NCBI RefSeq assembly: GCF_000315625.1
Contig: NW_005434606.1
Span: forward strand, 185,154-249,153
DNA from: Guillardia theta CCMP2712
Lineage: Eukaryota; Protista; Cryptophyta
DNA length: 64,000 nt
Direction: 5' to 3'
The notes below the pieces were generated by a model, which saw only the letters and a list, made by a program, of their open reading frames with translations, was not told the origin of the DNA and did not search any database. Position 1 is the first letter of the stretch. Every line of letters starts with the position of its first letter. This document shows, piece by piece, positions 2,440-59,290 of this stretch. A program made the translations under genes and the position numbers.

Positions 2440-3620
2440 CGATAGAGCAGCAGCCCTCCGCCGAGCCTACTAGTCGTGAGCGGCGGCCCCGGCCCACTGG
2501 GCCAGATCCGGGACCCCGTGACGCCGTGACGGGCCGAGGCCGCCGCCGCGTCGGGTTCACCGGCGTACTCAACCGTTAGTTCAAAACTTATCATCCTGGC
2601 CTGACTGAGTACCGTAGCCCATCCGATGATCCGGGATCGAGTCAAGTCTCCGCCGGAGGCGGACAGTAACAGTGCACTGCACGGGAGTCGCACAGGCCAC
2701 TGACCGTGCCGTACGGTACAGTGGCCGCGCCATCATGATCCGACAATGACTGTTCATTGATACGACCCGCGGTCGGAGAAGAGACTTGTGACTGTAGTTA
2801 CTGTGCCAGACTGAGACTCTCGCCGCCAGGCAACCGTCGGAACCGCGGGCCGCCCGGCCCTCAGCCTGGCCGGGACTTCCGAGGCTGCCGGTTTCAAGGC
2901 GCGGTGAGTCCGCGGCCCCAGCAAACTTTGGAACTTTCAAAGTTTAACCGGCGCCGCTCAGCAGCACGGCGATATAAACGCTTATCTCAGTTAACTTGCC
3001 TCACTCAGTGCCGCCGCAGCGCGCGCACTGGACACCGCCGGGATCGGATCACACACGTCGCAAGACCGGGGGAGCCTTCAGCCCGGCCGGGGTCGGAGGA
3101 GTCCGTGGCACTCATCTGCGGATCCCGGAGTCCGCAGCCCGGCTGTCGGACCGTGCGAGTCAGACGCCGCATCATCTGAGTCCGATCCGGTACTTGTCCG
3201 ACGCCGACGGTCAACTTGACGGCGGTCCGAGGCCGACGACCGATCGGACGGTGCCAGACCCCGGCGGCGCCGCCCAGTGCCAGCCGGAGGCTGCGGGGCC
3301 GCTCAGTGCCCGGCCACGTTTCAAGTTTGGTTGCGGCCGGGCCGCCGCGGCGCCGCCCGGCCCGGACACCGTGACCGTACGGTTCCCGGGAGCCTCGGAG
3401 AGCGGAGGCTCCGGGCCGACGGCGGGCCGCCGTCAGCCTCCGTGCAGTGCGGCCGCGGGCCGGCAGGCGGGCACCTCGCCTCCGAGTCCGATGATCATCG
3501 GATCATTCACTGCGGCGCGCCGGGGGGCCTTCGTACTGAACTTGACTCGGTGACCCCCCGTGGCACGGCACGGTTAAGTTCAAGATCGGGACTGTCACGC
3601 TGGACCCCGTGACAGTATCC
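2440..3620. other. GC/CpG-rich intergenic island (palindrome-word class)
   Basis: Dense CCGG, GGCC, GATC, CGTACG, GTCACGG and ACTCAG words; ORFs here are low-complexity R/G/P/A. Confidence 0.7.
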
Positions 3621-53903: not shown

Positions 53904-54713
53904 CCTTGCTATGAGACTGAGAGGACGAGGGAGAAGGAGAAGGAGAAAGGGAGGGAGGGAGGGAGAGGGAGGGAGAGGGAGAGAGAGAGGTGGGGCTTGG
54001 GGGGAGGCGGGGTGGCGGGGGCTATCAACGGCACAGTGGCAGGACGATCTTGTGCTTGACTGCGGCTCGACTACGGCTGCCACACCGAGAACTTGTCAAC
54101 GTACACTACAAGACGTTGGAACAGCGGGCTGTCTGCTGTATGTACAACTCAACGAACATCCAGATCGAGACCACGACGAGAGCAGATGAAAGGGATCAAG
54201 GGCAAACCTGTCACACGGCTTGCTGGTGGTATTAAGGTTACAACAAGGGGGATGCATCAAGCTTCAAGTTGTCCTGGTTCTTCCCTGATTCGAGGTACCA
54301 GGGCGTTGAGGTCGTTGTCTTACCTCTCTGAGCGTTATTCTGCTTTCGACTTCACAACTCCCTCCTTGTGACAGCTCCGGCGGCTAAGCACCCTTTCCTC
54401 CTCCCTTTCTCCCCCTCCCGGCCGTCCTCGCTCTCACCAACCGCCTTGCTTCAGAGTCTATCGTGGCAAGAGCGTGTTCGCTTCCTGGCCCATTCTCAGG
54501 CTGCGGCAAGCAGTAGACTTCTCACCCTGCTATGGTCCAGGCTTTCGAGCTTCATTATGAGACGAGACCAGCACAAACCAAGCTCTCAAGTCCTCATAAT
54601 CGTTTCGTCATCGACCCAACGTTTCTCCTTCTCTCACCGGGATCTGCTTCTCCTCTAACGAGTCTAGCATCCCTCAGTTGCCTGCGTCTCTCAGCGATGA
54701 TCTCCCGGTTGCT

Positions 54714-57700
54714 TCATGGGTCCTCGTCACCCATATCGTCTTGCTGCATCGACGGTTCACTAAAAGGTTTTGTTGCCAGCCCGACCTCCATAAGTATCAG
54801 TATCCTGTGTCTTCGGCACTCCTTCTCTCCGCCTGACACCACAGTGTGCCATCCTGAGTATTTCACTAGGTCCATCGTCCAATGCAGAACCAACCACCTG
54901 TCACCTGCACGTTTCGGTAGGATATCCTCGGCATTGTACTCTGCCAGCGCCGGAGCCATGAACAACAGGAGGTCGTGCCCGCCGATGGCTAGTTTGTTCA
55001 CAAACTTCTTCAGCCGCGATTGACCAACTGCCTGTCTCCAGTTCTTAAACTCCGCTGCACCCCTCATGCTTCTCTGGCCTTCAGGACCGTGGACGGGGCC
55101 CGCAAACTGTCCGTCCCGTCTCCGCTTATCCATACATCGAATGTAGTACCCGAAAGCTTGATGGTTAGGTATCTCACCTTCACTGTCGCGTAAGGGGATC
55201 AGATTACAGAAGCACTGAGTCAAGACTTTACGGAACTCCTCCGCCGATGTTTCGTCCTTCACGGAACCAAGCACTTCCTTCACTTTGCTTCCCACTTCCC
55301 TTCCGCAATGATGGCTGAGGGTCGAAAGTATGTCCTCGGGTTCGGCCCAGCTCGCCAACATCACGACGACTGCTCCAAACGACTCCAGCAGGTTCCCGTC
55401 TTGCCGCAGCGCATCCACTGCTGTCGGATCATCCATGGGCTTGAGAGCGTCTCGGTGAATTCTCCTCAACACCTCAAGGCTCGAGATTCTTCCGAAAGGC
55501 CTCCCACCGCCAGCACAGATCGCGACAGTGATAGGATCTACCCAGCCTGGCGGGAACTTGCTGGTCAAATCGTTCAGTTCGATCCCATTCATCTCAATCT
55601 TGTCCTCGATCCGATGAAGTCGAATGATTGACTCAGAGCTGCCGCGTGCAGGTACTTGGCTCCTCGGCCAAGCATTGAGAAGACCAAAACCCTGCAAGAT
55701 GTGCGCCTGACACATGCTTTCGTGCGTTGCTATCTGAAACATACAGTACAACGATGCGTCCTTCAGATTTTTCTTGTCAGCTCGTACCATGGCCAACACT
55801 GGATTCGCTAGATCTCGAAACAAGGTCGCGCTGTCTTTTCCTTGTCCACCACACCCATACTTGAAGAATAGATGGCAAAGCAATGGGTTGACATTGTCGA
55901 GCAGCCCCCCAATCATCTCTTCCCCAAACACCTGCTTCAGGATATCACGCTGCTCATCAGACTGAAGGATCATCGGAGGAAGAGCTCGGTGGGTGATGCA
56001 CTTGATAGTCTCTTGGTTCTTCCCTCGGCTATTTGTCGTCTGCTGCAAAGCATTGTTGAAATTCATCACCAGAGTGTTGGTACCCAACATGATACAATGA
56101 AAGCCTGCATTACGAAGAATCCTCTTGAGGAACAACAACCTCCATATGGCGTTGGCCCGGCAGGGAATACCTTGATACCTCGGGATTGCTTCATCGACAA
56201 ACACCCACAGGTCCCCCTTCTGGGTCCACAGCTTTGCTTCCCCCACGCTCACCTTTCCTGGACCTTTCGTCTTGCCAAACAGGTATCCCAGAACCCCAAG
56301 GACATTCCAGCTCGGGGCCAGCACGTCGATCGTCAAGACTTGCTGCTCACATTTTGTTGGGTCAAGGAAATCGATCCTGCGATCACACGCCTGGAGATCG
56401 AGATCGATGGCTACATTCAAAAGATGCGAGATGCCTTGTACATTCAGATATAAGTCCTGTTCCTGGACGTATCCGAACAAGCAATAAAGTGAAGTCTTTG
56501 GATTTCGTACAAAGTAGTCTGCAGCACACAGCGACTTCCCGCTCCCCGAGCATGCCTCGATCATACAAGTAACAATCCCGGCTTCTTGTGTCGCGTTTGC
56601 TACTACTTTGTCGATGGGGTTCCTTTCGCTGAATGTACCAGTTCTTGATCCCAGCACTTGGTCTAAGTATTTCTTCAGGCTGTCAACCACTCCTTCCAGC
56701 GCAAAGCTATACTTGAGAGAGATCGCATCCAACACTGCAAAACACCCTTCAGAGCTTTGCCTTTTCAAACCACCTCAACGCTCAGCACGGCAGCACACAA
56801 TCTCAGCAAGTACAGGTTACCTGCCGTATCCGACCGCCAAGGCAAAGATGCACGAAACTCTGCAAGCTTGGATTCATTGACGCACACCGAGCGCTGCAAA
56901 TCATCTATCAAATGGGTCTGATTCTGGGTTTGCGCATGATGCAGCTTCGCCTTCGCGACCTCTACCTCCCCCCTCAGCTTCGCCTCCACGACCTCTACCT
57001 CCCCCTCATGCTTCGCCTCCGCGACCTCGACCTCCGCCGCCGCGATCCCCTCCCCAGCCTTTTTTGCTGCTGCAAGCTTCGCCTTCGCGACCCCTACTGC
57101 CCCCTTCTTCTTCGCCTCAGCCAGGTCTATCTCCCCATTCTTCATCTTCTCCGCAACCTCGACCTCCGCCGCCGCGATCCCCCATGCGTCCCCAGCCTTG
57201 TTCGCTGCTGCAAGCTTCGCCTTCGCGACCTCTACTCCCGCTGTCTTCTTCGCCTCCGCGACCTTTACTCCCCCCTCCTGCTTCGCCTCAGCCAGCTCGA
57301 CCTCCGCCTCCGCTATCAACATCACGTCCCCAGCCTTGTTCGCTGCTGCAAGCTTCGCCTTCGCGACCTCTACTCCCGCTGTCTTCTTCGCCTCCGCGAC
57401 CTTTACTCCCCCCTCCTGCTTCGCCTCAGCCAGCTCGACCTCCGCCTCCGCTATCAACATCACGTCCCCAGCCTTGTTCGCTGCTGCAAGCTTCGCCTTC
57501 GCGACCTCTACCCCCCGGTTCTGCTTCGCCTCCGCCAGCTTTACCTCCGCCGCTGCTATCACCCTCTGGTTCCCAGCCTCATTCGCCGCCTTCAGCTTAG
57601 CCTCTGCAACATCAATTTCTGCATACGCTATCTGCACGCTGTTTCCGCTTTTGCGCGCTTCTTCTAGTCTCGCCTTCGCCAGGTCTTCCTCTGACGCGGG

Positions 57701-57793
57701 GAGGTCCCTCCGGTTCCCACGAGCATTCAACGGGTTCAGCTCCGCCGTCAGCTCCGCTTCTTCTTGTTCAGCTGGGCTTTCAAACCCTTCCAA
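54714..57793 (-). CDS. Crinkler-like protein: helical-repeat header + P-loop NTPase + PD-(D/E)xK nuclease (~1020 aa, 2 exons)
   Basis: A 47-nt GT-AG intron at 56820-56774 joins the two ORFs in frame; Walker A ACSGSGKS, Walker B WVFVDE, IMLGTN, DGNLLE, RRDGQF...GAAEFKNW. No in-frame ATG at the 5' end. Confidence 0.72.
57187..57512 (+). repeat. 138-bp near-perfect coding tandem repeat (~2.4 copies)
   Basis: Units start at 57187, 57325 and 57463 and encode a 46-aa unit on the minus strand. Confidence 0.92.
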
Positions 57794-58269
57794 GCAACTT
57801 CCCTCAGCTTCCGAAATGATTTCAAGTTTCTTACAAAAGTTGGTTCAAGGGTCCCGCTCTTTTGGGCAATTAAAGATTAGAGTAAGGTGGGTCCGGTATA
57901 CTGTTTTAACAGTTAGGGCTCTGGTACAAATTTCATGTTAACAGTTAACCGTTTTTCAACGGTTTTCGTCTTCCTGTTAAAATCAGTTTTAATGGTTAAG
58001 TCTTTTAAACTTCAAATCCGATCAAATTTTTAAAAGCACCGCGATTGTTTCATCGCGGTTAGTTAAATTTAAAAGTCAGATTTTTAAACTCCCCTGGTGA
58101 GCCCCCCCCCGACCCGCCTTGGCTCCATGCTGCCCCTCCCGCACTGCGGCGGCACAAGTCGCCCCCAACGCGCTGATCATCAAGAGCAATGCTCCTCTTA
58201 CTGGGTTATGCTATGATACACATCGATAGCATCCAATCCACCGTAAAGTGCACTTTCTCAATGCATCAC

Positions 58270-59290
58270 GTTGAAAGATTTCACGTCAAGAGCCGATGTA
58301 TTGCTGCTGTCAATCGACTTGGATCATAGCTATCCAAGTTTATTCAGAAGCTAGCACTGATGATTCCAGGGATAGCAACAGGTCTCTCAGACGCGATGTC
58401 CTTCCGAGTTCGGAAATGTCGGCTCAAGGTGAACACCATTTTGCAGATGTGAAGCTGATGATGTCGCAAATTCTAATTTCCCAGTCGGTGTATTCAAACT
58501 TGGTATGTTTGTCTGACTTTACATCGTCAACGATGTGCATTGGTCATGGTTTTGAAAGCTATAGTTTGTCTGTAATAAAGTCATTCTTACCGAGCTCTTA
58601 TCATCGTTTAAACCCATGCCAGCTCACTTGTTTCAACTTAGAGATCTGTTCTGGTTGCCCTTGTGTTCGACATTGGCATCGGAAGCACCTTGATCTGCGT
58701 TCGGACTGCTATTTAAACTTGGAGCTTTCAATTCATACAAGCTGAAATTCCACACAAAATCGAGTTGTTCATGCTCATTCGCTGTAAACATCCGACTGAA
58801 GCATTCGAGTGAGCGATTGATGATTGTTTGGGCATTTTTGTTTCCGCTGAGCTCGACGCAGATTCAAAAAGTTGCGGTGCAGATTGATAGAATTAGCTAT
58901 GCCTACTGCATCAGAGCATGGTTCTTTTGATGACGAGTCATCACCTACACTGTGCAAGTCTTGCTTGACGAAAAGGTAGGATGTCGTGTTAAGATGTAGA
59001 GGAGGATGAGATGAAGATTGAGACTTGTCTCGACAAACTCTGATGCTTCTGAAGCCATTTCGAGTAAAGTACCGTTGAACTGTGCATTGTTTCGCACGCT
59101 TGCTCTTTGGTTTCTTGACGGGATCACTTTGTGTGACAACACTGGATCGAGAGATACTTGTAGGAAGTTTCCTAACAAAGGTGTGGGACCACACAGGCAG
59201 TTTCGAGGTCACGGTAGGAAGAGCACGAAACTTGTTCGTGGGAACGAATTTTGCTGGTGGGGGCCAGTTGTGTCCGACATTTTGCATGTT
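58270..59290 (-). CDS. Possible hypothetical basic protein
   Basis: ORF segment MQNVGHNWPPPAKF...YFTRNGFRSIRVCRD with downstream exon-like pieces. Confidence 0.3.

Follow-up and report, generated by a model that had tools for sequence, protein, structure and literature searches.

NTPase-nuclease modules (NTPase, nucleoside triphosphatase) that act in biological conflicts are well studied in bacteria and as effectors of pathogens. To our knowledge, their role inside free-living eukaryotes is essentially untested. Here we analyzed a gene with this layout, GUITHDRAFT_113579 (P0001, 997 aa, annotated as a hypothetical protein), which lies on the minus strand of a 64,000-nt stretch of Guillardia theta CCMP2712 DNA (contig NW_005434606.1, positions 185,154 to 249,153), referred to below as the window. 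An earlier note, made from the letters of this DNA, had placed the gene in a non-pathogenic alga, and G. theta is indeed free-living.

The closest described systems are the Crinkler/RHS (CR) proteins. According to the summary of Zhang et al. 2016 given in PMC5289972, CR proteins carry toxin modules behind variable headers, which are ubiquitin-like (Ubl) or of various alpha-helical kinds. In the same summary, the combination of an NTPase, a helix-turn-helix (HTH) and a restriction endonuclease (REase) is the commonest CR module in Phytophthora and accounts for more than a quarter of all CR C-termini, and CR modules are proposed to derive from transposons. As far as that summary describes them, CR proteins share with the window protein a variable N-terminal header, a P-loop NTPase, a helical region and a domain of the restriction-endonuclease fold. 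However, the header of the window protein is an array of 11- and 24-residue modules and not a Ubl/LxLFLAK domain. The NTPase and REase folds of the CR C-terminal module were found in the window protein, and the region between them is helical, with no distinct HTH made out.

Three other groups of proteins are comparable in part. Avs4 (8dgf) likewise combines a STAND-type ATPase, an Mrr-like PD-(D/E)xK nuclease and a variable repeat part, and it was among the structural matches of both models described below (Z 8.4 for the ATPase and 4.4 for the nuclease). However, its order is reversed, with the nuclease at the N-terminus and the sensor at the C-terminus, and the likeness is an analogy of build only. 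The ATPases TnsC, TniB and MuB have a similar fold (Z 8.3-9.0), and relatives of the window protein give weak hits to the TniB and AAA_22 profiles; unlike those systems, the window gene has no transposase partner or element ends that we could find, and TnsA was absent among the top nuclease matches. Uncharacterized proteins of the chytrids Rhizoclosmatium, Obelidium, Terramyces and Gorgonomyces and of the aphelid Paraphelidium are homologous over the whole core and have the same invariant residues, but their identity to the window protein is just 15-20%, and they have other N-termini or none, without the array of Ala/Glu/Lys modules.

We read GUITHDRAFT_113579 as a real and probably functional nuclear gene of G. 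theta for an ATP-controlled intracellular nuclease with a variable header and a role in genetic conflict, and we put the probability of this reading at about 0.6. The protein appears to be laid out as a variable tandem-repeat header, an AAA+/STAND-like P-loop NTPase, a helical region that may be lid or winged-helix-like, and a PD-(D/E)xK nuclease. The fetched GUITHDRAFT_113579 locus maps back onto the window (gene start 58180, minus strand), and therefore the window is G. theta nuclear DNA. The gene was the top protein match to the longer of the two open reading frames (ORFs) and is already a public model, without an assigned function.

The program-made list gives two ORFs on the minus strand, 57793-56765 (342 codons) and 56768-54714 (684 codons), which the earlier note supposed to be spliced into one protein. 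An 86-nt phase-1 intron, from GT (56820-56819) to AG (56736-56735), joins both in frame (...SDTA/VLDAISL), and the public model has exactly this junction. The closest paralog (L002, scaffold JH993119.1) keeps the two-frame layout, the donor and the pyrimidine-rich CAG acceptor. Two further in-frame acceptor AGs are present, at 56775-56774 (exon 2 from 56773, 47-nt intron) and 56748-56747 (exon 2 from 56746, 74-nt intron), and the residues that alternative acceptors add (EGCF) resemble EGxF at the same place in more distant paralogs. Read from the sequence, the header is fused to the ATPase core whichever of the three acceptors is used. No RNA read crossed the junction, so the splicing and expression of the window copy rest on homology. 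The intron is also better conserved against L002 (~3295-3380; ~90% or more) than its flanking exons are (~85%), an unusual pattern that could reflect alternative splicing or gene conversion.

In the 684-aa ORF, to which all residue numbers of the motifs refer, Walker A is ACSGSGKS (72-79) and Walker B is VFVDEA (189-194; LWVFVDEA in the longer form). Both motifs had been recognized earlier, and their key residues S74, G75, G77, K78, D192 and E193 are invariant in a 43-sequence set that covers cryptophytes, chytrids, an aphelid and metagenomes, distant relatives included. The AlphaFold model of residues 1-400 (mdce6ad4d5542) has a predicted local distance difference test (pLDDT) score of 79.9 and a predicted template modeling (pTM) score of 0.86. 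VIA-align matched this model to NLR, ORC/Cdc6, TnsC, MuB and MalT at Z 8.0-9.9, and Foldseek to Apaf-1, ORC and CED-4 at E 5e-4. The nearest Atlas shapes were an uncharacterized 676-residue oomycete cluster (template modeling score, TM, 0.60) and bacterial AAA_22/TniB ATPases. In Pfam, weak AAA_22 hits were obtained for 25 of the 43 family members and TniB hits for three. The Walker motifs, together with a modeled core fold that carries a helical lid, indicate that the N-terminal domain of the core is an AAA+/STAND-type (ASCE) P-loop NTPase; the best matches from the STAND, ORC/Cdc6 and TnsC/TniB groups lie within 1 Z unit of one another. T230 and R248, which are conserved, are candidates for sensor or finger residues. 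In the models, the domain is followed by a lid or winged-helix-like part and then a helical linker, with STAND/ORC matches reaching to about residue 370. Pfam and PDB sequence searches with the window protein were blank, and searches of Pfam, PADLOC and PDB sequences with the core and family profiles gave weak generic P-loop hits only; PADLOC had no hit on the cryptophyte proteins.

The model of residues 400-684 (m8444a6961e1c; pLDDT 77.7, pTM 0.83) consists of helices followed by an alpha-beta-beta-beta-alpha-beta core, the elements of which are, in model numbering, H107-121, E141-145, E154-157, E170-175, H184-195 and E201-206. D552 lies just ahead of the second strand (154-157) and E573-x-K575 on the third (170-175), where the three residues are D153, E174 and K176 in model numbering. 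VIA-align placed PD-(D/E)xK nucleases in more than 30 of the top 50 rows and in nearly all of the best rows, at Z 5.0-6.2, which is middling by the tool's own scale. The matches include AF1548, Can2, AspBHI, LlaBIII, FokI, PaqCI, MspJI, NucS, Cap4, LmuA and HamA. The Atlas shape search with the same model returned Mrr_cat nuclease clusters (TM 0.60 measured by the target). Within the cryptophyte family, D547, D552 and K575 do not vary, and most members keep E573; across the distant relatives among the 43 sequences, the catalytic Asp is invariant and the Glu and Lys of ExK are nearly invariant. The restriction-endonuclease fold of the C-terminal domain, predicted from its D...ExK motif in the earlier note, is well supported in the model because the match list is consistent and the conserved catalytic residues fall on the right structural elements.

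The header has a high content of Ala, Glu, Lys, Val and Gly and is built of 11-residue modules (e.g., GVEVAKAKL) and 24-residue modules (e.g., AAANKAGDVMLIAEAEVELAEAKQ), which are grouped into 46-residue super-repeats. Tandem Repeats Finder (TRF) detected a period of 138 nt in 4.3 copies and a sub-period of 33 nt in 15 copies, and the Ala/Glu/Lys array reported previously is therefore real. In a scripted comparison, 138-nt units 1 and 2 were 100% identical to each other and 0.78 identical to unit 3; the identical units arose by recent duplication or are an effect of the assembly. In run X9, a contig connects 56969 with 57325 and has 19 other letters in place of the 355 nt between them; it represents a variant in repeat number, a paralogous sequence or a graph artefact within the array. 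On the plus strand, the header is overlapped by three long ORFs (178-251 codons) at 56912-57941. These arise from the repeat and its strong GC/AT skew and are not genes, and the frame kept open over the header in paralogs is the minus-strand one. We rejected a canonical coiled coil, as the header has no 3.5-residue hydrophobic periodicity and only weak peaks at 2.7, 9.1 and 2.2; the description of the header as a helical repeat is plausible. No relatives of the header were found outside the family in the PDB or Atlas.

Similar modules occur in the paralogs P0123/P0122 and in L002 copy 1, and more loosely in P0013, P0016 and P0140. In the L002 paralog, the 33-nt modules number about 31, are arranged differently and follow an ATG and a basic KRRR start. 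A close comparison is that between the neighboring genes GUITHDRAFT_104016 and GUITHDRAFT_104018 (P0123/P0122, on one 1-Mb scaffold), the cores of which are identical at 669 of 673 positions. Their headers measure 336 and 258 residues, with six and four long modules, respectively, and contain the same two module types with Arg replacing Lys. Unless the assembly collapsed repeats, this pair appears to be a direct case of a change in module number between very recent duplicates. Taken together, these comparisons make the header a feature shared across the family, with a module number that changes fast. The header had been called actively expanding: its copy number does appear to be unstable between paralogs, with the same caveat of assembly collapse, but expansion and contraction cannot be told apart from these data.

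To place the family, an exhaustive profile search was made of 1.84 billion representative proteins with a cut-off of E <= 0.001. Only 75 proteins were retained, and the 25 strong ones were cryptophyte proteins or fragments. The tail consisted of 650-800-residue proteins that matched mostly over the ATPase, the named ones being from the chytrid Rhizoclosmatium and the aphelid Paraphelidium; follow-up searches added the chytrids Obelidium, Terramyces and Gorgonomyces. An hhalign comparison of the cryptophyte family with the chytrid/aphelid group gave a probability of 100% and an E of 1.6e-40; the alignment spans 508 columns, from Walker A to beyond ExK, and the whole core is therefore an ancient unit. 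A search for paralogs, as proposed in the earlier note, found at least 13 G. theta gene models of the family on several scaffolds, with variable headers, and relatives were also found in Hanusia and Rhodomonas. The headers of relatives include a ubiquitin domain (P0072) and a coiled-coil-like start (P0063), and many relatives are headerless. In another subfamily, a single ORF holds both a helical-repeat header and the core, as seen in transcriptome-derived (MMETSP) proteins of G. theta (P0016, P0133). Family members at 38-62% identity are also encoded on four contigs of one environmental sample (L005-L008, metagenome Ga0172373), and a frame change inside the ATPase domain of L005 suggests an intron where G. 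theta has none.

The last 9.8 kb of G. theta scaffold JH993119.1 (L002, 1-9792) hold a tandem array of three near-identical paralogs (synonymous divergence, dS, 0.002). Copy 1 has a 517-codon header ORF, with the ATG and KRRR start, joined to a core; copies 2 and 3 are headerless 628-codon ORFs, each with an ATG immediately ahead of Walker A. Walker A is missing from the public 569-aa models of these two copies, and the array reaches the scaffold end and may continue beyond it. In P0113 (GUITHDRAFT_119726), which is how the L002 paralog is modeled in the public annotation, the header is preceded by some 500 fused upstream residues; no counterpart of this extension was found upstream of the window gene in the window, and residues 63-94 of P0113 gave a Sde2_N_Ubi hit below threshold (E 0.12). 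Paralogs P0006, P0007, P0010, P0012, P0014 and P0016 have KKRK/KRKR-like basic inserts near the C-terminus, in the loop before the last strand or in the tail. These inserts and the KRRR start of L002 look like nuclear localization signals, and the window copy is without the basic inserts. Between the window gene and its nearest paralog, the ratio of nonsynonymous to synonymous substitution rates (dN/dS) was 0.40 overall, which indicates that the window gene is under selection. By region, the ratio was 0.40 in the ATPase, 0.22 in the middle region, which is the most constrained part of the protein, and 0.82 in the nuclease.

Of the interpretation given in the earlier note, a P-loop NTPase joined to a restriction-endonuclease-fold domain behind an unstable repeat header is supported, and membership of the Crinkler/RHS type is a possibility that no profile hit bears out. 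By analogy, the window protein would work like a CR NTPase-REase protein and is built like one, and a kinship would rest on architecture and on language-model similarity: the best named language-model neighbors are Crinkler-headed Mucoromycota clusters (0.90, 0.87, 0.85) and RHS clusters (0.83, 0.80), which we regard as a lead only. All proteins reached by the exhaustive search and by two word-based profile searches were cryptophyte, chytrid, aphelid or unnamed ones, no Crinkler header was seen in Pfam scans of the longer relatives, and no literature was found on the gene names or on Guillardia together with Crinkler.

In the mechanism that we propose, the ATPase would bind ATP and assemble into oligomers or on DNA, as the ORC, TnsC, MuB and STAND ATPases do, and this assembly would license Mg-dependent DNA cleavage by the C-terminal domain. 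The header may be a fast-evolving part for oligomerization or target recognition. The family as a whole would take part in genetic conflict, either in defense against viruses or mobile DNA or through selfish behavior. A conflict module had been suggested in the earlier note, and we consider it the most reasonable reading because of the lineage-specific expansion, the tandem arrays, the variable headers and the patchy eukaryotic distribution. A more specific and rather doubtful view, built on analogy, is that the family is a eukaryotic counterpart of bacterial Avs/STAND-nuclease immunity, in which the hypervariable tandem-module header might serve as sensor or bait in the role of an LRR/TPR array. 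A viral or foreign-DNA cue would then trigger ATP-dependent oligomerization, the PD-(D/E)xK domain would destroy DNA in a manner resembling abortive infection, and diversification would come from header modules being quickly gained and lost among paralogs.

Several observations weigh against an active conflict nuclease encoded by the window gene. Expression of the window copy was not borne out by RNA sequencing: about 6% of one run gave 110 reads, of which few fell in the gene body, some with single-nucleotide polymorphisms (SNPs), and none over the header/core junction, so that coverage of this copy was close to nil in that sample; the runs from 2011 have the look of low-coverage DNA. Ahead of the repeats, the header exon lacks an in-frame ATG, and the 5' exon of the public model (58180-58114) sits in a segment shared with another locus. 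Foldseek of the nuclease model against the PDB found nothing significant, the scores of the structural matches to this domain are middling as stated above, the Glu of ExK is lost in a few paralogs, and the nuclease domain evolves fast. None of the 43 family members was hit by the profiles Crinkler (PF20147), RHS_N (PF20445) or RHSP (PF07999), with a cut-off as loose as E <= 10, and the exhaustive and the two word-based profile searches did not reach a named Crinkler or RHS protein. Finally, the conflict role is drawn from the behavior of the family and not from any observed interaction.

Some of these points are better accommodated by other explanations. If the window copy were a decaying paralog that is not expressed or not translated, while other family members perform the function, then the doubtful 5' exon, the near absence of RNA reads on the gene body and the SNPs in those present would follow, as would the lack of an in-frame ATG ahead of the header, whereas the L002 paralog has one. 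Yet both ORFs are intact with all catalytic residues kept, dN/dS against the nearest paralog is 0.40, and the RNA sample was small; decay is thus quite unlikely. An equally improbable alternative is a housekeeping enzyme of DNA repair, replication or recombination that was incidentally duplicated. An ORC/Cdc6-like ATPase fold joined to a nuclease domain would suit such an enzyme, as would purifying selection on the middle region, but a family with so few matches among the searched representatives and a patchy distribution, with many G. theta paralogs whose headers vary or are missing and with a fast-evolving nuclease, would not be expected of it.

The protein could also be a Crinkler-like toxin that is secreted or injected into prey, competitors or grazers, where the nuclease would damage their DNA and the header would serve trafficking. 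It has the core architecture of CR effectors, its best named language-model neighbors are Crinkler-headed, and the paralog model P0013 begins with a hydrophobic, signal-peptide-like stretch. However, it has no Crinkler/LxLFLAK header and no Pfam Crinkler hit, the window copy has no evident signal peptide (judged by eye), and the KRRR header start of one paralog and the KKRK-like inserts of several others suggest a destination in the nucleus of the alga itself. For G. theta, a phototroph, we know of no delivery apparatus, and we count this against delivery as well, to which we give little weight. There is likewise only a slim chance that the gene belongs to a mobile or recently domesticated element, moved by a TnsC/MuB-like ATPase and a TnsA-like nuclease. 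TnsC and MuB are among the top matches of the ATPase model, three relatives have weak TniB hits, the family is multi-copy, and a transposon origin has been proposed for CR modules in the summary of PMC5289972; but NLR and ORC matches score on a par with TnsC and MuB, and the structural signal does not discriminate. A link to transposons had been taken over into the earlier note. When the window locus was compared with three paralog loci by blastn, similarity started inside the header (57747) and ended 2 nt past the stop codon (54712), with no shared flanks or terminal repeats, and the transposon reading was rejected. No transposase or integrase is annotated near the gene, and copies stand in a local tandem array and not as dispersed identical insertions. 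We retain the intracellular conflict nuclease as the preferred reading.

The analysis also corrects the public gene model: its 3' intron probably does not exist, its 5' exon is in doubt, and there are three candidates for the header/core acceptor. At the 3' end (window 54674-54830), the model excises DRWLVLHWTMDLVKYS by an intron and ends with ...MGN at 54674, and the uninterrupted ORF stops at 54714. Paralogs retain the strand that is excised; W226, L227 and L229 (alignment A2) are nearly invariant, and the segment was modeled as a confident beta-strand. At the 5' end, reads and contigs of four runs match the ~0.5 kb at 57885-58392 but diverge from the window at both ends, and this segment is therefore common to another, abundant locus; the sequence that runs on beyond 58392 is not present in the window, and one contig had a depth of ~198. 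The predicted 5' exon is doubtful because it lies inside this segment. The coordinates are collected in Table 1.

Table 1. Coordinates of the features of GUITHDRAFT_113579 in the window, with the evidence for each
Feature	Position	Strand	Evidence
Predicted 5' exon of public model (MISALGATCAAAVREGQHGAKA)	58114..58180	-	P0001 sequence mapped to window; inside divergent segment 57885-58392
Header exon, ~324 codons	56821..57793	-	ORF list, TRF, 11/24-residue motif spacing, paralogs
Two adjacent 138-nt repeat units (57502-57365, 57364-57227)	57227..57502	-	Scripted unit comparison
Header/core intron GTAACC...TTTTGCAG, 86 nt, phase 1	56735..56820	-	Sequence, public-model junction, L002 donor and CAG acceptor
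P-loop NTPase domain (predicted), residues ~60-262 of 684-aa ORF	55983..56591	-	Invariant columns, model, structural matches
Walker A	56532-56555	-	Motif, residues 72-79
Walker B	56187-56210	-	Motif, residues 189-194
Conserved GTN	56076-56084	-	Within NTPase domain
Helical middle region (predicted), residues ~263-520	55209..55982	-	Secondary structure of both models; STAND/ORC matches to ~370
PD-(D/E)xK domain (predicted), residues ~521-684	54717..55208	-	Model, structural matches, conserved D and ExK
Codons of D547, D552, E573, K575	within 55044-55130	-	Conserved columns
Stop codon of uninterrupted ORF	54714..54716	-	Paralogs keep preceding strand

The neighboring genes encode an HhH-GPD glycosylase, an acyl-CoA dehydrogenase and a RAP-domain protein. 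The gene had been described as nearly intronless among intron-rich neighbors, which the public annotation contradicts: with the exception of one small gene, the flanking genes contain 0 to ~240 nt of intron each, and the model of the window gene contains ~510 nt.

The family would be useful as a test case, as it offers many paralogs, tandem arrays, natural headerless copies and clear catalytic residues to mutate, and header module numbers that differ between 99%-identical cores add to its value. Studying it could tell innate immunity, selfish elements and toxins apart, and would also test whether the Crinkler/RHS architecture reaches cryptophytes.

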